NCBI GenBank assembly: GCA_038087875.1
Contig: JAXLNO010001599.1
Location: forward strand, 124,001 to 188,000
Source of the DNA: Malacoraja senta
Lineage: Eukaryota
Reading direction: 5' to 3'
Length of the DNA: 64,000 nucleotides
A program made the position numbers and the translations under genes. Shown in pieces: positions 25,546 to 54,258 of the stretch (positions within the stretch are counted from its first letter, which is position 1; every line of letters starts with the position of its first letter). The notes beneath the pieces are model-generated. The model had not been told where the DNA came from. It ran no database searches and was given only the letters and a program-made list of their open reading frames with translations.

Positions 25546-25553
25546 TATTTAAA
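25546..25553 (+). promoter_or_regulatory. TATA-like box of the VH promoter
   Basis: TATTTAAA 87-94 nt upstream of the leader ATG, directly after a (CT)n tract. Confidence 0.6.
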
Positions 25554-25639
25554 CAGCGCTGACTGCTGCTCCAGACAAAGCCGGCCTGAGCTGGTCGCCC
25601 ATTCCTCGAGTGTCCAAGTGTGTGTCAGTGCTCAGAGTG

Positions 25640-25685
25640 ATGGGGGTCGCTGCTTATCTCTGTCTCCTTCTGTCCTGTCTGCCAG
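25640..25685 (+). CDS. IGHV: IgW heavy-chain leader (signal peptide) exon, MGVAAYLCLLLSCLP-G
   Basis: ATG at 25640, hydrophobic peptide, 46-nt exon ending in a phase-1 donor G|GTGGG, the usual split Ig leader. Confidence 0.9.
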
Positions 25686-25799: not shown

Positions 25800-26112
25800 G
25801 CGTTCGATCCGCGATCGTGCTGAATCAGACCCCGACCGCGGTGGCAAAGTCCGGAGAGTCCCTCAAACTGACCTGTGTAACCAGTGGGTTCTGGCTCTAC
25901 AGCTACGGCATGCACTGGGTGAAACAGGTCTCCGGGAAAGGGCTGGAGTGGGTGGGGGTTGTGTGGGGTGGTCGTGATAGTAGCAAACTATACGCGCCTG
26001 CCTTCAGCGGCCGATTCGAGATTTCCATGGACAGCAGCAACGTCTATCTCGAAATGAACCGCCTGACACTGGGCGACACGGCCACCTATTACTGTGCGAG
26101 ACATATGAGTAG
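25800..26112 (+). CDS. IGHV: IgW VH exon (GVRSAIVLNQ...LTC...WVKQ...GLEWV...DTATYYCAR + HMSS extension)
   Basis: Acceptor TTGGCAG at 25793-25799, open frame, conserved Cys/Trp/Cys, short FR3 (RFEISMDSSNVYL) as in IgW/IgX V regions, followed by an RSS. Confidence 0.95.
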
Positions 26113-26150
26113 CACAGTGTGAGAGATGGGACTTCCTCCATACAAAAACC
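26113..26150 (+). other. Recombination signal sequence, 22-bp spacer, 3' of V
   Basis: CACAGTG (26113-26119), 22 nt, ACAAAAACC (26142-26150): consensus heptamer and nonamer. Confidence 0.97.
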
Positions 26151-26476
26151 TGCCGCAACTAAACGCTTTAAATCACGTCTCTGGGCGCTGCAGCCGCCGC
26201 CTTTCCCCGGGACCCGTGGATATAAAGCAGATCCCGAGTGTATCATCTGGCACAGGGAACAAGTTCCACTGGAGATGTGGGAACACAAGCAGCGAGGAGC
26301 CGCTGTGGGTCGAGGCACGGTGACAGTCCCGGTGGGTTCTCTCATGTCCACTACAGGGCTGCAATGGCCGAGACTGGACGCTGTTGTGTGGGACACACAG
26401 GACACAGATGGATGGGGCTTTAATTAAGCCGCTGCCCACTCTGGCCCGTTGGATTTCGGGCTGGATGTGGTAGCAC

Positions 26477-26504
26477 AGTTTGTGAGCGGCGGTGAATCAC
26501 CGTG
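26477..26504 (-). other. Recombination signal sequence, 12-bp spacer, 5' of the J-containing segment
   Basis: Heptamer CACCGTG (26498-26504); nonamer AGTTTGTGA (26477-26485) at 12 nt matches GGTTTTTGT at 6/9; the 22- and 23-nt positions match only 2/9 and 4/9. Confidence 0.7.
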
Positions 26505-26557
26505 ATAGCTGGCTTTTGAATACTGGGGTGCAGGAACCTCGCTGACAGTGACTTCAG
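26505..26557 (+). CDS. IGHJ: JH segment, possibly pre-joined D-J (…LAFEYWGAGTSLTVTS)
   Basis: WGxG motif, LTVTS end, phase-1 donor CAG|GTAAG at 26558. Confidence 0.95.
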
Positions 26558-32488: not shown

Positions 32489-32797
32489 ATATTAAGACCT
32501 TGCCTTCAGTCCACATCACATCTTCCTGCAACACAGAATCTGGCCAAGAGGTCAGCCTCCTCTGTCTGGTCAAGGACTACCAGCCTGAGATCATCACTCA
32601 GACATGGTCCACCAGCAGTGGGGACATCACCACTGGAATCACTAAGTACCCACCAGTGTTGGGACAAAACAACAAGTACACAATGAGCAGCTTGCTGCGA
32701 GTCCCTGTGGCAGATTGGAACAGGAATAACGTCTACTACTGCAAGGCAGGATTCAAGCAGGACAACATGGTGAGAACGGAGATCCAGAAGCCTCAAG
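32489..32797 (+). CDS. IgW: IgW CH1 exon (DIKTLPSVHITSSC...LLCLVKDYQP...YYCKAG...EIQKPQ)
   Basis: Acceptor TTTCAG, 309 nt, C1-set Cys/Trp/Cys, N-terminal extra Cys for light-chain linkage, phase-1 donor G|GTTAG; resembles skate IgX CH1 from recall. Confidence 0.95.
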
Positions 32798-33993
32798 GTT
32801 AGTGTGAGATTTTGTTGTCCATTTAAAGCTGATAATTGAACTGAAGTGGAAGCCTTTGCCGAACAATGTAGGAGGAAGCGAATTACTTATTTTGCTCATT
32901 CATTCTCCTCCTATCAGCTAGAGTGCTGCACAAGGAAAAAGACAGTGAGAATTTATGTGGAAGGAGATAATGGTTGGTGGGGGAGGGGGGTGATTCACGG
33001 AGGAAGCATCTCATCTTGATCTGCCTCCATTCTATCCACTGCTTTGTCTAATTCCTGCAGCTCTCTCCCACCCCAAACACCTCCCTGCAGATCAGCTGCT
33101 GTGCACAGAGCCACACCTATTGTGCACAGTGTGGAGATTTAAACCTTCCTCACTCTTCCTGCACTTTCCCCTCAACCCTGCAGCCGACCCCTCACCAAGT
33201 GAAATCCAGTCTCCTTGTGGAAATGACATGAATCTGCTTCCACTCTCACTTTTAACCACTGCCTTCCAGTTCTGATCAAATCATTGCTGTCATAACAAAA
33301 TAAGTTTCTCGTCCATCTGACCTCCTTTCCCATTAAACTTAAAGTTGTGTCAGAAGGAACTGCAGATGCTGGTTTCAAGTGAAGATAGACAGCTGGAGTA
33401 ACTCAGCGGGTCAGACAGCATCTCTGGAGAAAAGGAGTTGGTGACGTTTTGGGATGAGACCCTTCTTCAGACTGAGAGTCAGTGAAAGGGAAAAGAGAGA
33501 TATATACGGTGATATAGAGAGATATAGAACTAATGAATGAAAGATATGCAAAAAAGTAATGCTGATAAAGGAAACAGGCCATTGATAGCTGTGGGCTAGG
33601 TGAAAACGAGTTACAGACAAAGTAGAGGTGAGGACAACTTAAAGTTGTGATTCCCAAACCTCCTGCCAGTAGAAACAGTTGTCTCATCTATTCCTCTGTC
33701 TGCTCCAGCACACACTGAGATCACAGATGGTCTGTACGCCACTTACTCACCTCCACCCTTACCACTGCAGAGTGGCCCACACTGCTGGGGAGGCCTGTGT
33801 TCTAACCCAGCCTCCCAATCACAGCTCTGACCAGCACCTCACTGTGGGACCCACCGTATCAACACATCACCGGCATATCACCTGCATTGTGGGGAGGGCT
33901 GGTACTGGGGCACTTGTCCCAGATGCTGGGAGAGTGGAATCCTACACTGTGGCTGAAGGAATCATGTTATAACAGATATTTTATATGTTGCAG

Positions 33994-34302
33994 CTTCTAG
34001 AGCTCCACAGCTCATCCCACTTGTTCCATCTCCGGAGGTTCTTCACAATCAAACAATTGCTGTCCTGGGCTGCATGATATCCGGATTCTCTCCTGACAAT
34101 ATTAAAGTTTCCTGGAAAAAAGCTGGACTTAATCAAGCGGGTGTCATTCTCCCGTCCACTCCGGGAACTAATGGTGGATTTGAAACAGTTGCTTACCTGC
34201 CGTTGCGTGTTGAGGAATGGACCAACAAACAGGAATATACTTGTGAAGTGACCCACGCGCCTTCCGGCTTCAGCGACAGGATCAACATGAGATATCAAGA
34301 GG
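33994..34302 (+). CDS. IgW: IgW CH2 exon (ASRAPQLIPLVPSP...LGCMISGFSP...YTCEVTH...MRYQE)
   Basis: Acceptor TTGCAG, 309 nt, C1-set motifs, donor G|GTGAG. Confidence 0.95.
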
Positions 34303-34758
34303 GTGAGTGGTGTCTGTTAATTTACTTACAGTATTAAACAATCTTACTGACATTTCCACCAAATTCCTGTCCCTGAGATCAGTCCTGTTGCGGTGTATTA
34401 TGTTCAGATTTGGCTTTTTGTAATTTAAGCCAATGCTTTCCATCAGTAATTCTAACTCATTCTACAGGACATGTAGAGAGGAAGGTCACCAGTGTGTTTA
34501 CTCTCACTCCTCTGGTTGCCTTTGTGTGCAGTGGTAAGAAAAATGGGACAGTGAATAAACCACCGGTCCCATTCGATATCTGGAGAAGATCTCTCTTCCC
34601 TTCTCACTGTCTTCTTTATGTTAGTTTGTCCAAATTCATCTTTTTCCACTGTTTCCTGAGTGTTCTGTATAGACAATAGGTGCAGGAGTAGGCCTTCGAG
34701 CCAGCACCGCCATTCAATATGATCATGGTTGATCATCCCCAATCAGTACCCCGTTCTT

Positions 34759-36609
34759 TTTTTTTTTTTATTTATTTTTTTTCTTTTTTTTCTCTTGCTT
34801 TTTTTGAAAGAAAAAGAAAGAAGTAAGAAAAGTGAAGAAAGTGCGCAAAGGTTGTGAAGTGCAAAAGAGTGTTGGGAAAAGAAAGCCCCTTAGAAAAGAA
34901 GTTAGAGAAGGAAGTAAAGTTAGAAAATAGACCCTAGAAAAGAAAGAGAAAGAAAGAAGGAACAATCGCTCTATTATAACTCTTATAACATACTTCATAG
35001 AGAAGGAACTACCAACCAAGTCTGTTTTTGTTTTACCTCCCATTACCAGGTCCAGATACCTTTTATTTATTTATTTGTTTTTCTAAATTACTATTGCACC
35101 TCATGCTTGTAATAGGTCCAAAAACGTAGACCACGTCTTTTGAAATTGGTCTACTTTGCCTACTAGGAGGAATCTCATCTCTTCCAGATGTAATGTTTCC
35201 AACATATTTGATGTCCACATTTTTATTGTTGGTGTGGGCGCATTTTTCCAGAATTTAAGTATAAGCTTTTTTCCCATTATTAGCCCATAATTGAGTAAAT
35301 TCTTCTGATACACGTTTAATTCAGGAATACCTTCCGATATTCCAAAAATAATCCATTCTGGTTTTGGTACCAGTTTTATTTTGATTAATTTTGAAAAAAT
35401 ATCAAATATTTCAAACCAGAATTTTTGGATTTTTGTACAAAAAACAAAAGAATGTGCTATGGTAGCTTCTTGACATATACATTTATCACAGATTGGTGAG
35501 ACGTTAGGAAAGATTTTATTTAGTTTGGTTTTTGAATAATATAATCTATGTAATGTTTTAAATTGGATAAGCGTATGTCGTACGTTGATCGAGCATTTAT
35601 GCACCTGTAATAAATGATTATCCCAACTCTCTTTTGAAATTTTTATACCTAGATCTTGTTCCCAATCTCTTCTAATTCCATCTGTTGTGGGTATTTCTAT
35701 GTTTAAGATGATATTATATAAGTATGATATTAAATTAACTGATTCCGCCTTTGTCTTCATTGCTTCATCTAGTAAGTCGGAAGGCATATTATAATAATCT
35801 TTTGTGTGTGTTTTCAAATAGTCACAGATTTGTAGATATTTAAAATATTGATTATTTTTCAAATTATATTTCAGTTGTAGTTGTTGGAATGATAGTAATT
35901 TTTCTAATTCATACAGATCTTCGAGCGTTTTGATTCCCATTCTTTTCCATTGTATAAATGATTTATCTATGATTGAAGGTTTAAACGATGGGTTATTGAC
36001 TATTGGTATTAAGAGAGATAGGTTTCTTAATTTTAGATTCTGTTTTATTTGCTTCCATGTTCTAATAGTGCTATATATAATTGGATTTTTATTATAATTT
36101 TTATTATTCAAATTTATTGGAGAGAGAATAATCGCTCCTATATTATTCGGGGAGCAATCCCCTTTTTCCATTATAATCCAGTCCACCTGCTGGGCAGAAT
36201 TGTCCAGCAGGTGAATCATATTTTTAATATTTACTGCCCAGTTATAATACATAAAGTTAGGGAGCGCTAGACCCCCCAACTCTTTTCGTTTGTTAAGGTG
36301 TGTTCTTTGTATTCTGTGGGATTTGTAATCCCATATAAAATTTGTAATGTCCGAGTCCAGTTTTTTGAAAAACTTTTTTGGGAGATATATAGGTATTGAT
36401 TGAAATAGGTAAAGGATTTGTGGTAAGAAAATCATTTTTATAGCATTTATCCTACCTATTAAGGACATCGGAAGTGTTTTCCAAAATTTAATCAAATTAT
36501 TTAATTTCTTAAGTAGGGGATTATAATTAGCTTTAAACATATCATGGTAATTTCTAGTAATCTCAATTCCTAAATATTTGAATTTTTCCATAGCTATTTT
36601 AAAAGGGAA
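34759..36609 (-). mobile_element. 5'-truncated L1-clade LINE with poly(A) tail and target-site duplication
   Basis: About 500 open codons of ORF2 C-terminus (KYLG, RINAIKM, CCHC-like CDKC...HSFVFC), T-run at 34757-34790, TSD AGTACCCCGTTCTT at 34745-34758 and 36610-36623. Confidence 0.9.
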
Positions 36610-36735
36610 AGTACCCCGTTCTTGCCTCTCCCCATATCCCCTGACTCCGCTATCTTTAAGAGCCCTATCTTGCTCTCTCTTGAAAGTATCCAGAGAATCG
36701 GCCTCCACCGCCCTCTGAGGTAGAGAATTCCACAG

Positions 36736-39700
36736 TACAAGATGGGCGGCCAGGAGATGTGCCAATACTGTGAGATGTGGGAATTTGTCGACACCATTGA
36801 TGTAGATGGTGTAGATGATCCCTACAGCTGCAGTAAGTGTTTGAGGCTAGCGGAACTCGAGCTCCGCATTGAGGAGCTGGAGACCCAACTTCATACGCTG
36901 CGGTACATCAGGGAGGGGGAGTATTACCTGGATGTTTTGTGCCAGGGGATGGTCACACCGACCAGTTTAACTAATTCAGTAGTGAGTGAGCAAGGAAAGG
37001 AAGGTGTGGCCATAAGCGAGGCAGGTAGGGGGAACCAGGAGGAGATGCGGCAGGAGCCACAGCCCTTGTTCCTGACGAGCATGACCGAGGCTCTTACTCA
37101 ATGTGAGGACGGGATCAGGGGCTGTGGGAGGGATGAGCAACCTGGCTGCAGCACCGTGGATCAGGGGGACATTCAAGAGGGGGAGTTAGAAGAAATGCCG
37201 TTGTGATAGGGGATAGTATTATTCGGGGGGTAGATAAGGTTCTCTGCGGCCAGCAGAACATGTCCCGAAGGCTGTGTTGCCTACCCGGTGCTAGGGTTAA
37301 GGATATCTCTGCGATGCTGGAGAGAAACTTGCAGAGGGAGGGGGAGGATCCAGTGGTCGTGGTCCATGTGGGGACCAATGACATAGGAAGGACGAGGAAG
37401 GAGGATCTGCTGAAGGAGTTTGAGCAGTTAGGGAATAAATTAAAAAGCAGAACCTCGAGGGTACTGATCTCCGGATTGCTACCTGAGCCACGGGCCAAAT
37501 CGGCGAGAGTACGTAAAATTAAAAAGCTGAATGCGTGGCTCAAAGACTGGTGTGGGAAAAATGGGTTTGGTTTCTTGGGCCACTGGCACCAGTACTGGGA
37601 CGGGGGGATCTGTTCTGTAAGGACGGACTTCACCTGAACGGTGCTGGGACTGGGGTCCTGGCAAATCATATAACTAGGGCAGTAGAGAGGTCTTTAAACT
37701 AAGTAGCGGGGGGGGAGGTATCAAGGGTGGTAATAACGGCAGGGGTAGAGGAAATAGAGCAGGGTATCAGTGGGGAAACAGAAAATCAAAATGTGACAGG
37801 AGGATCCAGAATGTGTGAAGATAAAGCTCTAGATGTAAAAGAGGCAAAAACAGAAAGGAAGGGTAGTAAAAATCATCTGAAAGTGCTGTATCTAAATGCA
37901 CGGAGTATTCGAAATAAGATAAATGAATTAACGGTGCAATTAAGTATATATAGTTATGATATCGTGGCCATTACGGAGACATGGCTGCAAGGGGATCAGG
38001 ACTGGGAGTTAAATATAGAGGGGTACTCGACAATTAGAAAAAATAGACAGGAAAGAAAGGGAGGAGGGGTGGCCCTTTTAATAAGGGAGGGAATAACAGC
38101 AATAGAGAGGAAGGATATTGCGTTGAAGGATCAGGATAGTGAAACAGCTTGGGTACAGATAGAGAATAACAAGGGGAAAAAAACACCAGTGGGTGTAATT
38201 TATAGACCTCCAAATAGCTGTGACGCTGTTAGTCAGAACATAAATCTGCAAATAGTTGACGCATGTAAAAAGGGAACTGCTGTAATCATGGGAGACTTCA
38301 ATTTTCATATTAATTGGGCAAACCAAACTGGGCAGGGTAAACTAGAGGAAGAGTTTATAGAATGTATTAGAGACGGGTTCCTAGAACAGTATGTCACAGA
38401 ACCGACAAGGGGGGAGGCAATCTTGGATCTGGTCCTGTGTAATGAAGCAGGATTAATTAAAAATGTCATAGTTAGGGACTCGTTGGGAACAAGTGACCAC
38501 AATATGGTTGAATTCCATATTCAAATAGAAGGGGAGCAGGTTGAAACTCAGGCTAGGGTACTTAGTCTAAATAAGGGGGATTATGAAGGTATGAGGACTG
38601 AGCTGATCAAAGTTGACTGGGATAGCAGACTCAAGAATAAGACGGTACATGAGCAGTGGTGTACGTTTAAGGATCTACTGTATAACCTTCAAGAAAAATT
38701 TATTCCTATGAAGAAAAAAAGGGGTAAGGGTAAGAACAGTCAGCCATGGCTCAGTAAAACTATAAAGGATAGTATTCGGCTGAAGGCAAGGGCATATAAG
38801 GTAGCCAGAGATAGTGGGAGGGTAGAGGATTGGGAAGCATTTAAAGGTCAGCAAAAAATAACTAAGAGATTAATTAAGACGGGGAAAATAGACTATGAAA
38901 GGAATTTAGCGAACAACATAAAAACTAATAGTAAGAGTTTTTATAGCTATATAAAAAGAAAAAGGGTGGCTAAGGTGAACGTTGGTCCATTGGAGGGTGA
39001 GACTGGAGAGTTGTTGGTGGGGAACATGGAAATGGCAAAGGCATTAAACGAGTATTTTGTATCAGTCTTCACCATAGAAGACACAAAAAATATTCCAACG
39101 CTGGATAAACAGGGGGCGGTAGGAATGGAGGAGCTAAATACTATTAAGATCACCAAGGAGGTGGTATTAGGGAAATTAATGAGACTGAGGGAGGATAAAT
39201 CCCCTGGGCCTGATGGATTACATCCAAGGGTCTTGAGGGAGATAGCGGTGGGGATTGTGGATGCATTGGTGATAATTTTCCAAAACTCCCTGGAGGCAGG
39301 AACGGTCCCAGTGGATTGGAAAATGGCCAATGTAACACCTATATTTAAAAAAGGAAGTAAACAGAAGGCGGGTTAGTCTAACATCGGTGGTAGGTAAAAT
39401 GTTAGAGACAATTATTAAAGAAACACTAACGGGGCACTTGGATGGACATGACTTCATCGGACAGAACCAGCATGGTTTTGTGAAGGGGAAGTCCTGTTTA
39501 ACGAATCTGCTCGAATTCTTTGAGGAAGTAACAACCCGGGTGGATAAAGGGGAACCGGTGGATGTGGTATACTTGGACTTCCAAAAGGCTTTTGACAAGG
39601 TGCCACATAAGAGACTATTGCTAAAAATAAAAAATTATGGGATTGGGGGTAATATATTAGCATGGGTAGAGGATTGGCTAACAAATAGGAAGCAGAGTGG

Positions 39701-40998
39701 GGATAAATGGTTCATATTCGGGATGGCAACCGGTAACTAGCGGGGTTCCGCAAGGGTCGGTGCTGGGACCCCAGTTGTTCACAATTTATATAAATGATTT
39801 GGAGGAGGGAACCAAGTGTAATATATCAAAATTTGCGGACGATACAAAAATGGGAAGAAAAGTAGGGGATGAGGAGGATAGGAAGAGTCTGCAAAAGGAT
39901 ATAGATAAGCTAGGTGAGTGGGCAACAACTTGGCAGATGAAATTTAATACTAATAAATGTGAAGTCATTCACTTTGGGAAAAAAAATGATAGGGCAAGTT
40001 ATTTTCTAAATGAGGAGGAGCTGCGCTGTAATGCAACGCAAAGGGATCTAGGGGTAGTAGTACATGAATCACTAAAAGTTAGTATGCAGGTGCAGCAAGC
40101 TATCAGGAAGGCCAATGGAGTTTTGGCCTTTATTGCTAGGGGGATTGAGTATAAAAACACGGAGGTCTTGCTGCAGCTGTACACAGTATTAGTGAGACCA
40201 CATTTGGAATACTGTGTACAGTTCTGGGGTCCATACTTAAGAAAGGATGTACTGGCCCTGGAGGCAGTGCAGCGAAGGTTTACAAGATTAATTCCTGCAA
40301 TGAGGGGATTGACATATGAGGAAAGGTTAAGTAGGCTGGAACTCTACTCTTTGGAGTTTAGAAGAATGAGAGGCGATCTCATTGAAACATATAAGATCGT
40401 GAGGGGCCTTGATCAGGTGGATGCACCGAGGATGTTCCCAATGATCGGGGAAACTAGAACTAGGGGACATAGTTGCAGAATAAGGGGGGGCTCTTTTAAA
40501 ACTGAGATGAGGAAGAACTTCTTCACCCAGAGGGTGGTTAATTTATGGAATTCACTGCCCCAGGGAGCAGTGGAAGCAGAAACATTAAATATATTTAAGT
40601 CTAAAATAGATGTTTTTTTAGCTGCCAAGGGGATAAGGGGCTACGGGGAAAGGGCAGGGATATGGACCTAGGTAGGGTTAGTATAGTAAGACCTGAGTGA
40701 TCTCCTGGACAAGTGTCGATCGCCTGGATTGGGGTCGGAGAGGAATTTCCCGGATTTTTTTCCCGAATTGGACCTGGGTTTTTATCCGTTTTTTTGCCTC
40801 CCCCAGGAGATCACGCGGTTCTTGGGGTGGAGAGGGGTGATAGCGGTATAAAGGGGAGGGTAGTGTCTTGTGTTCTGTGTCTTGTGTCTACTGTTTGTGG
40901 GTAGGGGTGTTTGTTTGGTGTTCAGCCATGAGCGAATGGCGGTGCGGGCTCGATGGGCCTGGTGGTCTGCTCTCGCACCTACTTTCTATGATTCTATG
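36736..40998 (+). mobile_element. Near full-length CR1-clade LINE with several frame breaks
   Basis: ORF1 with CxxC..CxxC, coiled coil and SGNH esterase (GDS, HVGTND); ORF2 APE (YLNARS, ETWL, GDFN, SDH) and RT (GVPQGSVLGP, FADD); 3' (ATTCTATG)-type terminal repeat. Confidence 0.95.
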
Positions 40999-41639
40999 AC
41001 TCACAACTGTGAGAAAAAGTGTTTCCTCATCTCCGTTCTAAATGGCTTACCCCTTATTCTTAAAAGATGGCCCCTGGTTCTGGACTCCCCCTACATCAGG
41101 AATATCTTTCTTGCCTCTAGCGTGTCCAAACCCTTAATAATCTTATATGTTTCAATAAGATTCCCTCTCATCCTTCTAAACTCCAGGGTATACAAGCCCA
41201 GCTACTCCATTCTCTCAGCATATGATAGTCCCGCCATTCCAGGAATTAACTTGATGAACCTACGCTGCACTCCCTCAATAGCAAGAATGTCCTTCCTCGC
41301 ATTAGGGGACCAAAACTGCACACAATACTCCAGGTGTGGTCTCACTAGAGCCCTGTACAACTACAGAAGGACCTCTTTGCTCCTATACTCAACTCCTCTT
41401 GTTATAAAGGCCATCATGCCATTCGCTTTCTTCACTCCCTGCTGTACCTTCATGCTTGCTTTCATTGACTGTTGAATAAGGACCCCGAGATCCCATTGTA
41501 CTTCCCCATTTCCCAACTTGACCCAATTTAGATAGTAATCTGCCTTCCTATTTTTGCTACCAAAGGATAACCTCACATTTATCCACATTAAATTGCATCT
41601 GCCATGCATCTGCCCACTCACCCAACCTGTCCAAGTCAC
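40999..41639 (-). mobile_element. CR1 fragment, host of the two nested LINEs (other pieces 34671-34758 and 36610-36735)
   Basis: RT C-terminal translation; the pieces rejoin into the same sequence seen uninterrupted at 11420-11700. Confidence 0.85.
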
Positions 41640-41874
41640 CTGTAGATTGCCCTTTCATTGAAATGTCGGTGCCCTGGATTATTTTTGAACTCATCTCCAC
41701 CCTCTTTAAAGTGTTGTCTGATCCTGGACAAAGTGAAGCAGTTTATTGTGGTCGGCATAATCTCATGCTGATAAATACTGAGGACACAGACTGGGAATAT
41801 GTGGATCTCCTGTTTCCTCAACACAGGAGGTGAAAATCTCTTAACATTTAAATCAATGAATCTTCCATTTCCAG

Positions 41875-42002
41875 GTGGAGAATGTCCCGGCTGCTCGAAG
41901 TGTCTGCCGAAGTTCTTCTACCAGAGTAATCTCAATGTGACATTCTCAGATGGTTCTACCCGGCAGTATCATTGTTGGGCAGGAAAGTGTGAAATAAAGT
42001 AA
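41875..42002 (+). CDS. IgW: Short-form IgW secretory exon, cysteine-rich tail GGECPGCSKCLPKFFYQSNLNVTFSDGSTRQYHCWAGKCEIK*
   Basis: Acceptor TTTCCAG, phase 1, five Cys, NVT sequon, stop at 42000-42002; matches my recollection of the skate IgX short secretory tail. Confidence 0.9.
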
Positions 42003-43778
42003 TTGGCTGCGTATGGAATTTGTCATTCTATTATTACAACCCATTTATAAGATTCAAATCCAACCCCTGGTATCCATTGGGATCAAAGTGTACCAGAGTG
42101 GGGGGAAATACCCAATTCAAGCTGCCTCCCTCTCCCCTCCACGTTGCCTGTATACTCATTCATTTGCAGACATTGCTGCTTCACATCCCAGTGCCAATGG
42201 CCAGATTTCTTCTTGCTCAGACTCTAGTCAGCAAGGACCACCCAGAGATCGCAAGGCAGGATATGTTTAAGGTGAATGGTGTGAAATGTCAAAGTGGCTC
42301 AGTAAAAAATTGGGTGACCCTATAATAAAGGCAAACTGGTGAGGCAAGATCCAGGGCTCTAACCGCTCTCCTGTCCCATACTGGCTTTGGGTGAAAACTG
42401 TGGTTAGCACAAATTGCCACAGATTTATTAACCCAACTCCCGGACACAGACCTCAGTCCAAAGGAGAAACTCAGGGAATGCAAGGAATGTTGCAAGGAAT
42501 GGACGTGTTTGGTTATATTCATCCAAGGATAAGCAAGACAAAATGTCTCTTGTGGAAGATACCAATATTTTACAGCATGGAGAGTATCTATACTCTGCCA
42601 GGTTTCATATGAGGCGATTTCCCCCCGACACCGCGATGGTGGAACTACACGACTGTCACTGATATGGGACGGGATTGAGCATCTTGCAAACACACATGTT
42701 AAACAATATCACATTGCTGATTAAAACAAGATTCACAAAGCAAGAACATTGTACACGGTTAAACTAGGCTTACAAATTTCTGATGACACTGCAACAACTG
42801 TCATCCACACTAATATCACGCACATAACTATTTTTGAAAGGAATTTGCTCGCCATTTTGCTTAAAGAATGAGGGGTTGTGAAATAGACAACATCTTACAT
42901 TGACAAATGTTATGTCTCCTGTCAGACAGATACTGTGTATGACCTCTGCTTCTACGCAGCTGAAGGCTTTAATCTCCAGGCTCACTGAAAGTTTCAATTC
43001 TGACACAAACGTAATCACCCTCCACAATAAGTGCTTGAGAGCAAAAACAGCTCATGTGGTCCAAGTGACTGAGTGTGTAAACAGTGCCCACACGAGAGTG
43101 ATCTGAGTGCAACTAGACTCATATTGCTGCTTCAGAAGACAAGTGGCAGTGCAGGTCAGTCAGGGGCAATGAATGAATAAATTATTCTCTTCCTCGCCCA
43201 ATGATTCTGAAACGGGAAAATACATCTAATGCAGAATTTCATCCCAATCTGCAGCAGGAGGGGGACCTTAATACTTCTAACCATTTATGATTTGCTCTGC
43301 TGTCGCTGGAGAGTCAGCCACTAATTTATTTCAGATAGTTTCTATCAATTACTGAAACGCCTCAAAGTCTTCACTGGAGCACAGTCACACTAAACTGACA
43401 CTAGTCTGTAGCCATTTTGCTACAGGTGTGGAGTTGCGTACTGGCCAGAACAGATATGATGACACATTCCCTTCCATGAAGTGCAGCAGTGAACTATCAA
43501 CATGCGTCACCACCAACGGAAGCGTTTTACGTCAGAATGCATTTATTAATAGAATTGAAATTCCCAGATCACGGGTTGGAATTTGGAGCTCATGTCACCA
43601 GATCGACAACTCCTGGATTCACATTTACCATCATTCCTCATTTCAAGGAGGAGAGATGGGATCTGCTGAGTGAGTTTTGGTGCTTGTGGGCAACATTGCA
43701 ACGTGACACAGCAAGTGGTACAAAGGTGAAAGGAGTGCAGGCTTACGAGTGCCCAGAGTTGGAGTAGTCGCCCAATGA

Positions 43779-43898
43779 GTCGTACCTTGTTCTGGTCGCC
43801 GTTGGATTTTCAACATGTTGAAAATTTTCGGCGACCTGCAACGACCTATGACGGGTGCCGGCAGTCGCCGAAAAAGTCGCGTAAGTGGGACGGGCCCT
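43779..43898. mobile_element. Right end of the same Harbinger-type MITE family
   Basis: AAGTGGGACGGGCCCT|TTA end, same subterminal repeats. Confidence 0.7.
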
Positions 43899-43954
43899 TT
43901 AGTAACAGATGAGTCTCAACTAAAATTCTGAACTTTTCCATTTCTGATCCACAG

Positions 43955-44257
43955 TATTGTCCGTCTTCATTCAAAATCCTGGCATGAAAGAGATTTGGAT
44001 CAACAAGACCGCTACGCTGGTGTGTTCAGTGATCTGTAGTGATCCGAGCCAGGTCCATCTCACCTGGAAGGTGGGAGGAAAGGAGAGAAGTAAAGGAGTT
44101 GTGACCCGTACACTGAGCCATGAAGGCACCCGAAACCCAGTGATCAGTGAACTCCGGACCAGCGTGGAGGAGTGGACCAGCGGGGTGGAGTTTGTGTGCT
44201 TCGCCCAACAATCTTCATCATCCTCACCAGTGTCAGCGCGGACCAACCATAACAAAG
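43955..44257 (+). CDS. IgW: IgW C3-type exon, copy a (VLSVFIQNPGMKEIWINKTATLVC...EEWTSGVEFVC...NHNK)
   Basis: Acceptor CACAG, 303 nt, C1-set motifs, donor G|GTGGG. Confidence 0.93.
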
Positions 44258-44803
44258 GTGGGCAACAGATCAGTGATTAAATGGCCGTGACAGAGAGAGA
44301 GAGAGGGTACAGAGGGGATTTACAAGGATGTTGCCAGGGCTAGAGAGCTATAGGGAGAGGTTGAGTGGGCTGGGACTCTATTCCTTGGAGCGTAGGAGGA
44401 TGAGGGAATATCTTATTGAGGTGTATAAAATCATGAGAGAAATAGATTGGATAGATGCACAGAGTCTCTTGCCCAGAGTAGGTGAATTGAATACCAGAGG
44501 ACATAGGTTTAAGGTGAAGGGGGAAAGATTTAATAGGAATCTGAGGGGTAACGTTTTCACGCAAAGGTTGGAGGATGTATGAAACAAGCTGCCAGAGCAG
44601 GTAGTTGAGGCAGGGACTATCCTAACATTAAAAAAACAGACAGGGACAGGTTTGGAGGGATGGGGACCAAACACGGCAGATGAGACTAATGTAACTGGGA
44701 CATGTTGGCCAGGGTGGGCAAGTTGGGCTGAAGGGCCTGTTTCCACACTGTATCACTCTATGACTCTACGAGAGAGTTTAACATTTATTTTCCTCTGTTC
44801 CAG

Positions 44804-45121
44804 TTGAGCCCAAAAAACCTGAAGTCAGACTGCTGCTTCCAGCACACGAAGAGACCAAGCGTAGCCACAAGGTCACCCTCGAGTGTGTGGTCTCTGGATT
44901 CTACCCAGACCTCATCACCGTCACTTGGAGTAAAGACGGTGCCCTGATCTCCAACAACACCAGTGCTGCACCAACTGCTCTGGAGCAGGGGGGCACTTTC
45001 AGTGCCATCCACTTCCTGACCATGAGTACAGAGGATTGGAAGTCAGGCTCACGCTTCGATTGTACAGTGTATCATCGCGCCTCCAACACCATCATCACGA
45101 AGGATGTGAAGAACATCCAAG
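44804..45121 (+). CDS. IgW: IgW C4-type exon, copy a (VEPKKPEVRLL...LECVVSGFYP...FDCTVYH...KNIQ)
   Basis: Acceptor TTCCAG, 318 nt, C1-set motifs, donor G|GTAGG. Confidence 0.93.
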
Positions 45122-45255
45122 GTAGGCTCCTGGGATTCACTCCATTCTCCACATTGTAAACTGTGTCACACATGGGCAACACTGTAACACGGTGCAGTCC
45201 TGTTGTGGGCTTGTAAGTGAGTCTGGCCACAGAAATAATTGTATCTTTGACATTG

Positions 45256-46370
45256 CTTTAGAAACTTGAGGGCAATCCAAGCCAGTCGACAGGCCAGACA
45301 CGGTGGAGATCCACGATACTCTTCTTCAAAACGGTCTTTCCCTCTGCCTTTGTACTTAATGCCAGTGGGTGCCTCAGCTGTGACAGAGTGTCCAGCAGAG
45401 CAGCTCTCTCCCTGCCCCAGCGTGGCAACAGTCAGTCTGGGCAATGTGTAGCAGCCTCTGGAACAGGCCGGCTGCAACACACAACATTCTGACAAAGCAG
45501 CAGGAGAGTTTAGTTACACCTCATGGATACAAACTGCATTTAAACAGTTGTGACTAAATGAAAGGACACAAAGTGCTGGAGTAACTCAGCAGGTCAGGCA
45601 ACATCCCTGGAGGACATGGGGAGGTGAGGTTTCGGGTCGAGACCTTTCTTCATCCTACTCCAGACCACTCGCGACTAAATAACATAATGCCGCTGCTTCT
45701 AATTTATAATATAAAGTGAAGAACTTTCCGCTGACTGGTTAGTACGCAACACAAGCTTTTCACTGTACCTCGGTACACGTGACAATAAACTAAACTGAAC
45801 TGAACATTTTGACCTCAAACATTAGCTTGATTTGCCTCTCCTCAGAGGGAATTTCATACATTTGATTCAGTAAATAGCTGGTAACAGGTTCAATGATCAC
45901 AAAACTGTCAAATAATGTAAAAGTCAACTTGTTCATTCACATTGTTTAGCAAGGTTTCCTTGTGGGATCAATAGGAAGCTTCATTCCTACACCAATGTAG
46001 ATAAAACTCCCTGAAGTTGATTGGACCGGCATATCATTCGGTGGAGATGAACACAAAATACTTCAGTGGCAAGCTGCTCCATCAGGGAACGATGACATAA
46101 TAATTGTGATTTTTCTAGATGGCTGTTCAGATACCCACCCCTCGGTCACTTTAAGCAAACCTTCCTTCGAAGAGATCTGGATCAACAAGACAGCCACCAT
46201 TCTGTGTAAGGTGGTTCACAATGATTTAGAGGTATTCAGGGTAACCTGGCAAGTGAATGGAATGAAGAGAGAAGACGGGGTGACAACTCATGGTGCAGAG
46301 AGGATCGGAGGTGCAGACACCATCACCAGCGGACTGACGGCCCCCGCTGCAGAGTGGGAGAGTGGGGCTC
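45256..46370 (+). repeat. Segmental duplicate of 53074-54189 (intron plus 5' part of C5)
   Basis: Near-identical sequence at offset about 7818. Confidence 0.95.
46119..46370 (+). pseudogene. IgW: Truncated C5-type exon (DGCSDTHP...EWESG), second Cys and splice donor lost
   Basis: Near-identical to 53938-54189, then breaks into repeat sequence; frame runs to TGA at 46409-46411. Confidence 0.9.
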
Positions 46371-48594
46371 CAGAGATGGCGTCTCTCCAGAGATGGCGTC
46401 TGTCCCACTGAGTTACTCAAGCTTCTTGATAAATGAATCGTTGGAAGCTCCTTCGTGGCGTGTTGCTATTCAGAGTTTTAAGTGTATTTGTACTAACCCG
46501 TGCAATATGCTTGCCAAAGATAGGAGGCGTTCAGTGGGGAAGTTCACAAAATAAGTTCACAAGTTCAAGAAGGAACTGCAGATGCTTGAAAATCGAAGGT
46601 AGACAAAAGTGTTGGAGAAACTCAGCGGGTGCGGCAGCATCTATGGAGCGAAGGAAATAGGCAACGTTTCGGGCTGAAACCCTTCTTCAGTCTGAAGAAG
46701 GGTTTCGGCCCGAAATGTTGCCTATTTCCTTCGCTCCATAGATGCTGCCGCACCCGCAAATAAGTTCACAAGCTGCGTTGGTAATTAAGACCAGAGTTAT
46801 TTTTGTGTGTTATGAAAGATAAATTAATTTCAGGTTTTTTACTTCACAATTATTCTCCTAAAAAGTTACCCACAACTTTACATTGTAAATGGGTTGGTTT
46901 CAGTCCAGCAAAAACACATAACATAAGTCCTTAATGACATTTCTTAGAAACACAGTGAGAGAGTGTGAGGTGTAGATGGGATATGACTCCAATTTTTAAC
47001 TAACTCCTGTGTTCGTGTATTCATATTTTTCCAATAAATTATGGTATCTACACCGGATGATAGATAGTCTATCGTACAATATAGGAAAACATTCTCATAT
47101 TTACAATTAAGGGCCAATTGTATTCGGGTTTTTAATAAAAACTCTGTTTACCTGAGTTTAAATTGAAACTTGGGCCAGGCGCTGGGAAACTCTGGGACAC
47201 CACTGCTGAAGAGAACATCTGAGCTTTGTCTTTCATTCAAAGGTTCGCGGGGAGGCTGGGTTGACTGTTGGGCTCTGAAAACTGATTCCCAGGGCTGGGG
47301 TGAGTGTGAAAGGGATGGTTTCTGGGCAGATCTGCCCAATCAGCAATGTTTTGAGCCGCTGCTTTTTATACAGTTTAAGTCGCAACGGTGGGACGGCTGC
47401 TCTGACGGACATACTGGGTGAGTAGAGACACACACACTGCTATCCCTCTGGTCTACGGACCTTGCTATCGGGGGAAAAAATAACCTTAATGTTCAATTTA
47501 CCTAATCTTTTTGTTAGATGTTTACCAATGTTTTGATGAGAGATAAATTAAGGGAATAAAACAATCTTACTAGACACAAAAAGCTGGAGCAACTCAGCCA
47601 AGCCGGACGGCAGAATCTCTGGAGAGGAGGGTCGAAACGTTTTTTCAGTCTGAAGAAGGGACTCGACCAGAAACGTCACCCATTCCTTCTCTCCAGAAAT
47701 GCTGCATGTCCCGCTGAGTTACTCCAGCATTTTGTGTCTATCTTCGGTGTAAACCAGCATTTGCAGTTCCTCCCGACACAAAACAGCCTATGCCTTTCAA
47801 TGATTGATGCCAGACCTTGAACAAATGCTGTTCAAATGGACTTTTGAATGCAATTTTGGAAGGATTGTTTCTTGAAACAAACTGCTCTAAAAGTTTGTGG
47901 GAAGGAATTGCAGATACTAGTTTAAACCAAAAATAGACACAAAATGATGGACTAACTCAGCTGGTCAGGCAGCATCTCTGGAGAAAAGAAATAGGTGATG
48001 TTTCCGGTCGAGATCGTTCTTCAGGCTGTGTCTATTTATAGTGAAAATAAAACTGCATGACATCATTTTTACCATGTGATGATTTTTCCACACGTCGGTA
48101 GTCGTTGTTGGCTCAAGAGTAACTCGGGAGAGGAGCTTGGTAACTCGGGAGAGGAACTTGGTACATCGCAGAAATGAGAAGTAAACGGCAAACTTGGACA
48201 TACACGTGGGAACTCGTTTAAACTCGTGAACATAAACTTGGAATCTCGTAGACAACCACGAGTTCGATTTTTTCTTTCACTCGGGATCACTCGTGGGTGG
48301 ACTCGCACCGTGAGACAGGGTATTAGTGTTATTGTATTTGTATAAGTGTTGTGGAGAATGTATTGTGTTCGATTATTAGAAATTAGAGAGTGCGCATAAT
48401 TTCAAGGGTCAAACTCTGTATAAATGCTGAGTGGAATTTCAGAGCAGCAGGTAACTGGGACTGTGCTGCTCTCTTTGTGCACACGTCAATAAAGTGAGTC
48501 TGGAAAATGAATGCAAGTTGTCAGAGTCCAGTTGATCGGCGACGACAACACCAGACCTTGTCCGGTTTGTAAGCTTCCTATTTCTCATCTGCAG

Positions 48595-48897
48595 AATTGT
48601 CTGTCTTTATCCAAAACCCCTCCACTGAAGAGATTTGGATCAACAAGACCGCTACTGTGGTGTGCATGGTAATGGGTGCTGATCTGAGCCAGGTCCAAAT
48701 CTACTGGCAAGTGAGCGGAAGGGAGAGAACAACAGGGGCTGTGACCCACCACCCGAGAGGGGAAAGGACCCAAGACAGAGTGAGCAGTAAACTCCAGAGC
48801 AGTGTGGAGGAATGGACCAGTGGGGTGGAGGTTGTGTGCTCTGCCCAACGATCTCCATCATCCTCACCAGTGTCAGCACGGACAGAAAGTGCCAAAG
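48595..48897 (+). CDS. IgW: IgW C3-type exon, copy b
   Basis: Acceptor CTGCAG, 303 nt open frame, donor G|GTGGG. Confidence 0.9.
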
Positions 48898-48943
48898 GTG
48901 GGCGAGAGATCGGCAATGATACGGCCAACATTAGTTACCATGA

Positions 48944-49281
48944 AGGGCCTGTCCCACTTACGCGACTTTTTCGGTGACTGCCGGCACCCGTCATAGGTCA
49001 CTGTAGGTCGGGAAAAATTTTCAACATGTTGAAAATTCAGCGGCGACCAGAAAGACGCTACGACTCTTTATGCGACTTAGGAGACTCACGACCATACAGG
49101 CGACACCTTGGTGACATGTCGTGGGGTGAAGCCTGTATGGTCGTGAGTAGTCGCCCAAAGAGTCGTACCTTGTGCCGGTCGCCGCTGATTTTTCAACATG
49201 TTGAAATTTTTCGGCAATCTGTAACGACCTATGACGAGTGCCTGCAGTCAACGAAAAAGTCGTGTAAGTGGGAGAGGCCCT
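48944..49281. mobile_element. Harbinger-type MITE in the C3b-C4b intron (copies at 51000-51309 and 62830-63167)
   Basis: TIRs AGGGCCTGTCCCACTTA / TAAGTGGGAGAGGCCCT, 3-bp TSD TGA on both sides. Confidence 0.85.
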
Positions 49282-49323
49282 TGAGAAAGAGGGACTCACG
49301 TCTACTTTGTTCCTCTGTTCCAG

Positions 49324-49641
49324 TTGAAACAAAAAGACCCAAGATCAGACTGCTGCCTCCAGCTCACCAAGAGACCAAGCGTAGCCACACAGCCACCCTC
49401 GAGTGTGTGCTCGCTGGTTTCTACCCGGACCTCATAAACGTCACTTGGGAGAAAGATGGAGCCCCGATCTCCTCCACTACCAGCGCTACACCAACTGCTC
49501 TGGAGCAGGGGGGGACTTTCAGTGCCAGCCACTTCCTGACTGTGAGTTCAGAGGATTGGAAGAAAGGCTCAGTCTTCGGCTGTACAGTGTCTCATCCTCC
49601 CTCGAACACCATTATCAGTCGGGAAGTGAAAAGCTTTCAAG
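49324..49641 (+). CDS. IgW: IgW C4-type exon, copy b
   Basis: Acceptor TTCCAG, 318 nt open frame, donor G|GTACG. Confidence 0.9.
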
Positions 49642-49952
49642 GTACGGTGCTGGGATTCACTCTAATCATCACATCTTTTACCCCGTCACAAAATAGGGCC
49701 AGGCAAGTTTTGCACTGCAGGACAGGTGTTGTAGTGTGTGAGTGAGGGAGTGATAACCAAGAGGCCTAGACTAGTGTCAAGAAGAGTCAAGAGTGTTTTA
49801 TTGTCATATGTCCCAGACGGGACAAGGAAATTCTTACTTGCTGCAGGACAACAGAATATGTGAATATGTAAACATAGTGCATAACGGGGGAAGAGCAAAA
49901 AAGAAAAAGTTCAATAAATAACAAATAGTGCAAATAACAAATAATAATATAG

Positions 49953-50530
49953 TATTTAGCCTGATGGCCTGATGATTAAAACTGTTCTTCAGTCTGGTGG
50001 TACTTGCAGCCATGCTCCTGTATCGTCTGCCTGTCGGTAACAAGGAGAACAGTCTGTGTGCTGGGTGGCTGTGGTCCATGATGATGCTGTGTGCCTTCCG
50101 CAGGCAACGCCGGTGGAAAATGTTTTGAATGGCCAGGAGACAGTTGCCAGTGATGTGTCTGTGCCGCCTTCACCACTCTGTAGTGATTTGCGGCTGTGGG
50201 CAGAACAGTTCCCGTACCAGACTGTGATGCAGCCCGTCAGCAGGCTCTCGATGGTGCATCTGTAGAAGTTTGTGAGGATGCTGGCGTTCATGTCAATCTT
50301 CCTCAGTCTTCTCAGGAAAAAGAGCCACTGGCGGGCTTTCTTTGTTATTGTGTCCGTGTGCAGTGTCCAGGAGAGGTCCTCAGTGATGTGCACACTGAGG
50401 AACTTGAAGCTGCTGACCCTTTCAACCTCAGCATCACCGATATGGATGGGGAGGTGTCCACTCCCCTGCTGTCTCCTGTAGTCCACGATCATCTCTTTAG
50501 TTTTGCAGACATTGAGAGAGAGGTTGTTCC
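49953..50530 (-). mobile_element. L2-type LINE fragment (copy begins at 63839)
   Basis: ORF 49989-50540 motifs KTKEMIVDYR and FYRCTIES. Confidence 0.8.
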
Positions 50531-50650
50531 TTGTGCACACGTCAATAAAGTGAGTCTGGAAAATGAATGCAAGTTGTCAGAGTGCAGTTGATCGGTGACG
50601 ACAACACCAGACCTTGTCTGGTTTGTAAGCTTCCTATTTCTCATCTGCAG

Positions 50651-50953
50651 AATTGTCTGTCTTTATCCAAAACCCCTCCACTGAAGAGATTTGGATCAAC
50701 AAGACCGCTACTGTGGTGTGCGTGGTAATGGGTGCTGATCTGAGCCAGGTCCAAATCTACTGGCAAGTGAGCGGAAGGGAGAGAACAACAGGGGCTGTGA
50801 CCCTCCAACCGAGAGGAGAAAAGACCCAAGACAGAGTGAGCAGTAAACTCCGGAGCAGTGTGGAGGAATGGACCAGCGGGGTGGAGGTTGTGTGCTCTGC
50901 CCAACGATCTCCATCATCCTCACCAGTGTCAGCACGGACAGAAAGTGCCAAAG
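50651..50953 (+). CDS. IgW: IgW C3-type exon, copy c
   Basis: Acceptor CTGCAG, 303 nt open frame, intact donor. Confidence 0.9.
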
Positions 50954-51351
50954 GTGGGCGAGAGATCGGCAATGATACGGCTAACATTAGTTACCATGAA
51001 GGGCCTGTCCCACTTACGCGACTTTTTTGGTGACTGCCGGCACCCGTCATAGGTCGTTGAAAATTCAGCGGCGACCAGAGAGACGCTACGATTCTTTATG
51101 TGACTGAGGAGACTCACGACCATACAGGCGACACCTTGGCGACATGTCGCGGGGTAAAGCCTGCATGGTCGTGAGTAGTCGCCCAAAGCGTCGTACCTTG
51201 TTCTGGTCGCCGCTAGATTTTCAACATGTTGAACATTTTCGCCAACCTGTAACGACATATGATGGGTGCCGGCAGTCGCCGAAAAAGTTGCGTATGTGGG
51301 ACAGGCCCTTGAGGAAGAGGGTCTCACATCTACTTTGCTCCTCTGTTCTAG

Positions 51352-51669
51352 TTGAAACAAAAAGTCCGAAGGTCAGACTGCTGCCTCCAGCTCACCAAGA
51401 GACCAAGCGTAGCCACACAGCCACCCTCGAGTGTGTGCTCTCTGGTTTCTACCCGGACCTCATAAACGTCACTTGGGAGAAAGATGGAGCCCCGATCTCC
51501 TCCACCACCAGCGCTACACCGACTGCTCTGGAGCAGGGGGGGACTTTCAGTGCCAGCCACTTCCTGACTGTGAGTTCAGAGGATTGGAAGAAAGGCTCAG
51601 TCTTCGGCTGTACAGTGTCTCATCCCCCCTCGAACACCAGTATCAGTCGGGAAGTGAAAAGCTTTCAAG
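51352..51669 (+). CDS. IgW: IgW C4-type exon, copy c
   Basis: Acceptor TTCTAG, 318 nt open frame, intact donor. Confidence 0.9.
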
Positions 51670-53937
51670 GTACGGTGCTGGGATTCACTCTAATCATCAC
51701 ATCTTTTACCCCGTCACAAAATAGGGCCAGGCAAGTTTAGCACTGAAGGACAGGTGTTGTAGTGTGTGAGTGAGGGAGTGATAACCAAGAGGCCTAGACT
51801 AGAGTCAAGAAGAGTCAAGAGTGTTTTATTGTTATATGTCCCAGACGGGACAAGGAAATTCTTACTTGCTGCAGGACAACAGAATATGTGAATATGTAAA
51901 CATAGTGCATAACGGGGGAAGAGAAAAAAAGAAAAAGATCAATAAATAACAAATAGTGCAAATAACAAATAATAATATAGCCTTTTGCAGTTCAGAGCTC
52001 AGAGCTTATTCGTTGTGTTTAATAGCCTGATGGCTGTAGGGAAGAAGCTGTTCCTGTACCTGGTCGTTACAGTTTTCAGGCTCCTGTAACTACTTCCTGA
52101 TGGCAATGGTGAGATGAGTGTGTGGCCAGGATGGTGTGGGTCCTTGATGATTTTGGCTGCCTTTTTGAGGCAGCGACTATGATAGATCCCTTCGACGGTG
52201 GGGAGGTCAAAGCCGGCGATGAACTGGGCAGTTGTCACAACTTTTTGTAGTCTTTTTCGCTCCTGGACGTTCAAGTTGCTGAACCAGGCCACAATGCAAT
52301 CAGGACTAGGGCACAATGCTAAATATTTCTGTGCTTTCACAACTTCAGTTTATTCCAAAACTCCTCAGTAGCCAGGACACTGAGAAGACCAAGCCTGCTG
52401 TTCTTCAAAATTAGTGTCACGGGGTCAGTCCACTTATTGTTGTCGGCCCTCTGTGTGTGGCATCTCAGACTAGTTGTCTTGCTGCTAATTTGAAGAGTGG
52501 GGTCGAGTATTTGCACTTGTACAATTGTTTGTCGACACTGGAAAAGTGGTCCATCAGAAAGTCCATTGTGTGGATGGAGCTGGGTACAAGCATGTTGTCA
52601 TTGGAGTGATCATGGAGTCTAAGATTTATACAGGATGTTAACAGGCCCTTCGGTTCAGCTTGCCTTTGCCAACCAAGGTGCCCGATCTACACTAGTCCCG
52701 TCTCCCCGTGTTTGGCCCAAATCACTGATCATCTCATGTTCCTGTGATAGGAGCAGAATTAGGCCATTCAACCCATCAAGTCTACTCTGCCATTCAATCA
52801 TGGCTGATCTATCTCTCCTTCCTAACCCCATTCTCCTGCCCTTTCCCCTTGACAGCAATACTAATCAAGAATCGATCTATCTCTGCTTTTTAAATACCCA
52901 TTGAGTGGGCCTCCACAGCCTTCTGTGGCAATGAATTCCTCAGATTCACTACCCTGTGTCTAAACAAATTCCTCCTCATCTTCCTAGAGGAACCTCCTTT
53001 AATTCTGAGGCTATGGTCCTCGACTCTCCCACCAGTGGAATCATCCTCTTTACATCAGCTCTATCCATTACTACTTTAGTAACTTGAGGGCAATCCAAGC
53101 CAGTCGACAGGCCAGACACGGTGGAGATCCACGATACTCTTCTTCAAAACGGTCTTTCCCTCTGCCTTTGTACTTAATGCCAGTGGGTGCCTCAGCTGTG
53201 ACAGAGTGTCCAGCAGAGCAGCTCTCTCCCTGCCCCAGCGTGGCAACAGTCAGTCTGGGCAATGTGTAGCAGCCTCTGGGACAGGCCGGCTACAACACAC
53301 AACATTCTGACAAAGCAGCAGGAGAGTTTAGTTACACCTCATGGATACAAACTGCATTTAAACAGTTGTGACTAAATGAAAGGACACAAAGTGCTGGAGT
53401 AACTCAGCAGGTCAGGCAACATCCCTGGAGGACATGGGGAGGTGAGGTTTCGGGTCGAGACCTTTCTTCATCCTACTCCGGACCACTCACGACTAAATAA
53501 CATAATGCCGCTGCTTCTAATTTATAATATAAAGTGAAGAACTTTCCGCTGACTGGTTAGTACGCAACACAAGCTTTTCACTGTACCTCGGTACACGTGA
53601 CAATAAACTAAACTGAACTGAACATTTTGACCTCAAACATTAGCTTGATTTGCCTCTCCTCAGAGGGAATTTCATACATTTGATTCAGTAAATAGCTGGT
53701 AACAGGTTCAATGATCACAAAACTGTCAAATAATGTAAAAGTCAACTTGTTAATTCACATTGTTTAGCAAGGTTTCCTTGTGGGATCAATAGGAAGCTTC
53801 ATTCCTACACCAATGTAGATAAATCTCCCTGATGTTGATGGGACCGGCATATCATTCGGTGGAGATGAGCACAAAATACTTCAGTGGCAAGCTGCTCCAT
53901 CAGGGAACGATGACATAATAATTGTGATTTCTCCCAG

Positions 53938-54258
53938 ATGACTGTTCAGATACCCGCCCCTTGGTCACTTTAAGCAAACCTTCCTTCGAAGAGATCTGGA
54001 TCAACAAGACAGCCACCATTCTGTGTAAGGTGGTTCACAGTGATTTAGAGGGATTCAGGGTAACCTGGCAAGTGAATGGAATGAAGAGAGAAGACGGGGT
54101 GACAACTCGTGGTGCAGAGAGGATCGGAGGTGCAGACACCATCACCAGCGGACTGACGGCCCCCGCTGCAGAGTGGGAGAGTGGGGCTCTGTACACCTGT
54201 GTGGTGGAGGACAAGAGTTTGCCAACACCGGAGAGCAGATCCTTGGAGAAGCCGACAG
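53938..54258 (+). CDS. IgW: IgW C5-type exon, intact (DDCSDTRP...ILCKVVH...YTCVVED...LEKPT)
   Basis: Acceptor CCCAG, 321 nt, both C1-set Cys, donor G|GTACG. Confidence 0.93.

Follow-up and report, generated by a model that had tools for sequence, protein, structure and literature searches.

The 64,000-nucleotide stretch of Malacoraja senta DNA analysed here (the window) probably carries a partly pre-joined batoid mini-locus of the IgW (IgD) type, with the arrangement VD1 - 22-RSS ... 12-RSS - D2J - C. The structural part of this reading, VD1...D2J, is nearly certain on the sequence comparisons below. That both joins were made in the germ line is very likely. The configuration itself is already known, in horned shark IgM since 1988; the window adds an IgW example in which both junctions are traced, one to D1 and one to D2.

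A single V, a single J and several C1-set exons make up the cluster, which extends from 25.6 to 57.7 kb on the + strand. No second V or J is present in the 64 kb (the two lie on the + strand), and the window contains 0 N and no gap. Its parts, whose anatomy and descent can each be followed in the DNA, are the following.

25546..25553, + strand: TATA-like box TATTTAAA, the predicted V promoter (motif search; promoter function putative)
25640..25685, + strand: leader exon, MGVAAYLCLLLSCLP plus a split Gly codon (ATG at 25640, GT donor at 25686)
25800..26101, + strand: VH exon body, to the CAR codons (open frame, conserved Cys/Trp/YYCAR)
26102..26112, + strand: V-D1 coding joint and D1 remnant CATATGAGTAG (free D1 in relatives' contigs)
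26113..26150, + strand: 22-spacer RSS, by descent the D1 3' RSS (perfect heptamer and nonamer; sawfish comparison)
26151..26476, + strand: D1-D2 intergenic DNA (aligned with the sawfish D1-D2 interval; RSS scan)
26477..26504, + strand: 12-spacer RSS, by descent the D2 5' RSS (sawfish comparison; relatives' contigs)
26505..26513, + strand: D2 remnant and D2-J coding joint ATAGCTGGC (free D2 in organisms B and C)
26514..26557, + strand: JH coding segment (..FEYWGAGTSLTVTS), with WGxGT motif and splice donor at 26558
32503-32799, + strand: CH1 (Pfam C1-set)
33999-34295, + strand: CH2 (Pfam C1-set)
from 43960, + strand: repeated CH3/CH4 pairs (Pfam C1-set)
53964-54260, + strand: CH5-like exon (Pfam C1-set)
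57257-57661, + strand: last C exon with secretory tail (Pfam C1-set)

On the V side, leader and VH are intact from 25640 to 26112. A leader intron of 114 bp separates the leader exon from the start of the V exon at 25800, and the intact V matches Pfam V-set (E 9.6e-12). The CAR codons (TGTGCGAGA, 26093-26101) are followed by 11 nt, CATATGAGTAG (26102-26112), and then by an RSS with heptamer CACAGTG (26113-26119), a 22-nt spacer and nonamer ACAAAAACC (26142-26150). This RSS has 0 mismatches to the consensus. It is the only exact consensus match in the 64 kb, where 0.85 matches are expected by chance at <=3 mismatches.

The RSS on the J side is far less conspicuous. It has nonamer AGTTTGTGA (26477-26485), a 12-nt spacer and heptamer CACCGTG (26498-26504), and it lies 4 positions from the consensus; a pattern search with the consensus 12-RSS at <=3 mismatches returns no match. 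Therefore, it has no significance by itself, and what supports it is orthology. Against the D2 5' RSS type of sawfish (GGTTTGTGA-12-CACCGTG) it shows 1 mismatch, with 0.04 such matches expected by chance. The J coding sequence (26505-26557) then reads ATAGCTG, GCTTTTGAATAC and TGG..., up to a GT donor at 26558; its start, ATAGCTGGCTTTTGAATAC, is followed by TGG GGT GCA GGA. The 19 nt ahead of the J tryptophan codon are not in themselves unusually long for a JH. Hence we build the case for D2 on RSS type and orthology, not on length.

From heptamer start to heptamer end the two RSSs span exactly 392 bp. The elements on which an earlier note on this DNA was based (the RSS pair, the 392-bp interval, 11 nt after CAR and about 7 nt before the J core) are thus all present. 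The note had also claimed that V and J have no free D between them. A two-strand RSS scan of the 392-bp interval finds no further credible RSS and hence no free D. We considered a cryptic D in the interval and rejected it: the only two hits, at 26251 and 26474, are weak (4 mismatches in either nonamer) and unconserved in sawfish.

Spacer types alone do not single out one arrangement. A 22 spacer after V and a 12 spacer before J also fit a V-23 facing a 12-D1D2J, that is, a V-D1D2J cluster whose V RSS faces the D1 5' RSS, or a natively D-less V-J cluster. What decides between these and VD1...D2J is the origin of the interval and of the RSSs at its two ends. As reference we used the IgW cluster of the smalltooth sawfish, Pristis pectinata (GCA_009764475.2, loci L001 and L002), named 'immunoglobulin delta heavy chain-like' by NCBI, a name given by automatic annotation. 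The layout of L001, read directly, is unjoined: V-23, 12-D1-23, 12-D2-12, about 23-J. This is the order that the earlier note had given for unjoined clusters, V-22/12-D1-22/12-D2-12/22-J, with spacers of 23 in place of 22. The segments of L001 are as follows.

V end: ...TGTGCGAGAGA, then CACAGTG-23-ACAAAAACC
D1: GGTTATCGT-12-CACAGTG, ACTATATACTGGATGG, CACAGTG-23-ACACAAACC
D2: GGTTTGTGA-12-CACCGTG, ATATGGATATAC, CACGGCG-12-ACACAAACT
J: heptamer and weak nonamer with a 23 spacer, then ACTATCTTTACTAC TGG

The sawfish V ends with GCGAGAGA, to which the heptamer adjoins directly. From heptamer to heptamer, the spacers are 432 bp (V-D1), 397 bp (D1-D2) and 401 bp (D2-J).

The two clusters have the same layout and share 78-94% of nucleotides from the promoter to the J-C intron, and 70% of amino acids in CH2. 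The 140 nt 5' of the ATG are 78% identical, with the block CTATTTAAACAGCGC in both. Identity is 94% in the leader exon (43/46 nt), 83% in the leader intron, 79% in V, 85% in J (29/34 nt from the Trp codon to the donor) and 80% in the J-C intron. Since identity is 78-94% in all compared parts of the cluster, the comparison is between genes of the same kind throughout. At the protein level, the best V match in a word-indexed search is also from a batoid (Mobula, 62%), and the Pristis 'immunoglobulin delta heavy chain-like' gene is among the matches; this search, made with the V ORF, returned no close skate V protein or cDNA. The difference between the clusters lies in the joins. The sawfish keeps all three spacers and six RSSs, whereas in the window the V-D1 and D2-J spacers are gone, and with them four RSSs.

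The spacer that survives is the middle one. Aligned end to end, the 392-bp interval matches the sawfish D1-D2 interval at 326 of 379 positions (86%), with a score of 365 (shuffled sequences score 2.6 +/- 1.6). It gives no alignment with the sawfish V-D1 and D2-J intervals (scores 14 and 13). The RSSs agree with this assignment: the V-side RSS shares 34/39 positions with the sawfish D1 3' RSS compared to 28/39 with the sawfish V RSS, and the J-side RSS has the same heptamer and nonamer as the sawfish D2 5' RSS except for one base. Hence two proposals of the earlier note, that the interval is the D1-D2 spacer and that the surviving RSS pair is the D1-to-D2 pair, are borne out. The alternative it had kept, a natively D-less V-J heavy chain, is contradicted by the D1-D2 orthology of the interval and the RSSs. 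Interval and both RSSs are orthologous to D1-D2 and not to V-D1, and the V side carries nucleotides of D1, the J side those of D2 (see below). We give a D-less cluster, or a V-D1D2J one, next to no chance.

Two features of the interval are worth recording in their own right. It is slightly better conserved towards sawfish (86%) than the V exon (79%), and its best conserved block (26197-26252, 93% identical) holds GGATATAAAGCAG, with TATAAA at 26221. The block may be a promoter for DJ-type sterile transcripts. Furthermore, the spacer of the J-side 12-RSS (26486-26497, GCGGCGGTGAAT) is like the D1 5' RSS spacer of organism B and of sawfish, and unlike the sawfish D2 5' spacer. This resemblance suggests that, in the skate lineage, the two 12-RSSs have undergone exchange or conversion.

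The ends of the joined segments can be assigned with the help of close relatives. We compared public contigs of related runs (organisms A, B and C) across window positions 25500-26900, and the findings hold among the contigs listed. An organism B contig covers 26105-26507 with 14 differences. Leftward it continues as ...ACGGCGGTGAAT CACAGTG ACTAC, that is, a free D1, ACTACATGAGTAG, with its own 5' 12-RSS and, on its 3' side, the same 3' RSS as the window. Rightward it continues as CTGGCC CACGGCG-12-ACAAA, that is, a free D2, ATACTGGCC, with a sawfish-like 3' 12-RSS. Organism C (apparently DNA) has the same right-hand end as organism B, with free D2 ATACTGGCC and CACGGCG-12-ACAAA. The sawfish D2, ATATGGATATAC, and the free D2 of organisms B and C share the same 3' heptamer. 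On the left, a contig of organism C follows V to 26101, continues with 280 other letters and then takes up the window sequence from 26103, which is an unjoined V-D1. Contigs of A and C match the window rightward from 26103; those of A, B and C align across the 12-RSS as far as 26507, after which all relatives' contigs depart.

In the relatives, the homologous interval thus lies between a free D1 ending ...ATGAGTAG and a free D2 starting ATA. Therefore, the extra nucleotides that follow CAR derive from the 3' end of D1, and ATA(GCTGGC) derives from the 5' part of D2, as the earlier note had expected of the two extensions. By this comparison CATATGAGTAG holds the 3' 8-10 nt of D1: at least ATGAGTAG is D1-derived, and the D1 part is probably ATATGAGTAG. 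At the V-D1 joint the V end was trimmed by about 1-2 nt and D1 by about 3-5 nt, with at most 1-2 untemplated bases. On the other side, the ATA at the tip of D2J is certainly D2 by its match to the free D2 segments, and ATAGCTGGC is probably D2 joined to a trimmed J. The D2 share before J is 3 to 9 nt. Its boundary with J is ambiguous within this range because nothing in the free D2 of the relatives corresponds to the G at 26508, which could be an N nucleotide or a later insertion.

From these comparisons we propose the following history. The ancestral cluster would have been V-23/12-D1-23/12-D2-12/23-J. Two RAG-type coding joints, V-D1 and D2-J, would have been made later. The first would have removed the V RSS, a spacer of about 200-400 bp and the D1 5' RSS; the second, the D2 3' RSS, a spacer of about 400 bp and the J RSS. 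Both joints show slight trimming of the ends and at most 1-2 untemplated bases. With such joins, the V-side end ...AGACATATGAGTAG and the 12-RSS before J would not be native to the unjoined V and J. The joins were most likely made in the germ line, as in other germline-joined Ig genes of cartilaginous fish.

Alternatively, the two joins could be a product of the assembly: an ordinary V-D1-D2-J cluster would have been collapsed and its V-D1 and D2-J spacers lost. In favour of this, the region is part of a multi-copy family, the window contains large recent duplications, and the closest runs include the unjoined form. However, the collapse of a repeat would leave one RSS in place, without the coding end. 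Instead, each junction is a clean coding joint in which D nucleotides are retained (D1 in one, D2 in the other) and exactly one 12/23 RSS pair is missing, and the window has no N or gap. A collapsed assembly is therefore very improbable, and real joins of V to D1 and of D2 to J remain the preferred reading.

A harder question is whether the joins are fixed in the germ line. In organism A, X1 shows 0 differences from the window over 26112-26392 and 26421-26507 (368 nt), and X2 differs in 4 letters. Those organism A contigs that reach the ends of the interval run on for 54-91 letters that disagree with the window past 26103 and 26507; therefore, an unjoined copy or allele exists there. No independent contig among those listed contains the joined form across either coding joint; such contigs drop minority paths. 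Exact look-ups in public assemblies with the V-D1-spanning ORF and the interval ORF return no record.

Joined IgW genes of other kinds occur in the same material. Organism A has a fully joined IgW paralogue, V(26101)+TGACA+J(26522), which is out of frame and has the identical junction in two samples, and organism C DNA has a joined paralogue V(26095)+22 nt+J(26522), which is in frame. The TGACA paralogue means that joined IgW genes exist in the lineage; both samples could come from one animal.

VD-DJ could be real without being a fixed germline form. The assembler could have kept a somatic two-step intermediate of a lymphocyte clone, or the joined gene could be an allele, rare or heterozygous, of a locus that otherwise stands unjoined. 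Shark B cells and thymocytes commonly contain VD-DJ intermediates (PMC2435157), and what the closest runs show is the unjoined form with an identical D1-D2 interval (0/368 nt differ in X1), with no joined contig among those listed. Yet somatic junctions vary from cell to cell and should not win a consensus assembly. Another joined IgW gene of the lineage has its TGACA junction unchanged in two samples of organism A, and in sharks near-identical joined and unjoined paralogues are the norm (PMC2193156). On balance we consider a somatic or unfixed form improbable and prefer inherited germline joins. A more specific version of the germline scenario is that the joined gene and an unjoined copy with identical D1-D2 interval, be they alleles or very young paralogues, coexist after very recent germline RAG events; we regard this as possible, at rather long odds.

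The two remaining RSSs, D1 3' (22 spacer) and D2 5' (12 spacer), have the same orientation, and their heptamers face the coding ends; the pair is deletional and obeys the 12/23 rule. Rearrangement and expression we infer: in a lymphocyte, a single deletional RAG cut-and-join would remove the 392 bp and complete the V exon. The resulting CDR3 would have fixed flanks, CAR-H-M-S... and ...(L)AFEY-W, around one variable junction, similar to a light chain.

We simulated such joins without N addition, taking 0-6 nt off VD1 and 0-9 nt off D2J. In-frame joins make up 24 of 70, and 19 of these 24 are free of stops (for example CARHMSRLAFEYWGAGT). The untrimmed join is in frame and reads CARHMSR-stop. 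The tip of D2J contains TAG (26506-26508) in the J frame, and thus a productive join needs trimming of at least about 2 nt. Since stop-free in-frame joins are obtained, the cluster can, in silico, yield a short CDR3 whose one variable junction lies between fixed flanks. No run recorded as RNA contains the stretch. The 26112-to-26505 joint of a single-junction CDR3 transcript is likewise absent among the contigs listed, which is weak evidence because contigs drop rare and diverse junctions.

Germline VD-DJ or VD1-D2J clusters are documented in cartilaginous fish and listed in reviews (PMC2193153; PMC5192425). For horned shark IgM, germline VD1-D2J, VDD-J and VDJ clusters go back to Kokubu et al. 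1988, as summarised there. For elasmobranch IgH loci, a paper that cites skate work puts the joined share at about half (PMC3308330). We found no description of a VD-DJ cluster in skate IgW/IgX in a literature search that excluded the early skate papers.

The window shares with horned shark IgM the cluster-type organisation, the pre-joined V-D1 and D2-J, the D1-3'/D2-5' RSS pair that is left, and derivation from an unjoined cluster via RSS-directed coding joints with trimming. It differs in being IgW, in its batoid host and in having a near-identical unjoined counterpart in the closest runs. The somatic 2R 'VD-DJ' intermediates of nurse shark (PMC2435157) have the identical configuration, made by the same two joins. 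However, these arise per cell in lymphoid DNA, whereas the form in the window comes from a genome assembly and was most likely inherited. With Ig light-chain V-J clusters the window shares the one RSS pair and, presumably, the single somatic join that makes CDR3. In contrast to a light chain, its V side has a 22/23 RSS and D1 nucleotides, its J side has D2 nucleotides, and its constant region is that of a multi-domain heavy chain.

Pre-joined antibody genes of sharks and skates show the action of the RAG recombinase in germ cells. The receptors that they encode are limited in diversity, in the present case to one junction between fixed CDR3 flanks, and may serve early in life. Because a near-identical unjoined counterpart occurs in the closest runs, the locus is a practical one for asking whether germline joining is recent or polymorphic. 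Polymorphism of joined and unjoined forms has been sought in nurse shark light chains by Lee et al. 2000 and was not found (PMC2193153; PMC2193156). If the joined and unjoined forms are alleles or very young paralogues, then germline RAG activity has been recent in the lineage. A joined/unjoined polymorphism, if true, would show directly that Ig genes are still being rearranged by RAG in the germ cells of skates.

The constant region (32503..57661, + strand) comprises at least eight C1-set exons, with Pfam E values from 1.6e-08 to 5.6e-21. CH2 is 70% identical in amino acids to an exon of the sawfish 'immunoglobulin delta heavy chain-like' gene. By its number of C1-set exons (at least eight) and by sawfish orthology (about 80% in the V-to-J flanks), the heavy chain classifies as the IgW/IgD type.

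Beyond the single exons, the region contains much repeated sequence. CH3/CH4-like pairs lie at about 43.9/44.8, 48.6/49.4, 50.6/51.4 and 62.5/63.3 kb (window 43960-63604), and the block at 47.9-49.8 kb is repeated at 61.8-63.7 kb, 3' of the secretory-tail exon (57257-57661). The J-CH1 intron holds a 21-nt tandem repeat (29643-30171, 25.6 copies, 97% matches) with the unit CACCCCAGCACCCTGCTGCTC. The complementary strand of this repeat, which is the template strand, is G-rich and has GAGCAG/GGGGTG motifs. In tetrapods, switch regions are found at the position of the J-CH1 intron. Finally, retrotransposon ORFs of the endonuclease/reverse-transcriptase type (up to 554 aa) occupy 35101-40671, between CH2 and the first CH3 exon, and this insertion lengthens the CH2-CH3 intron to about 9.6 kb.
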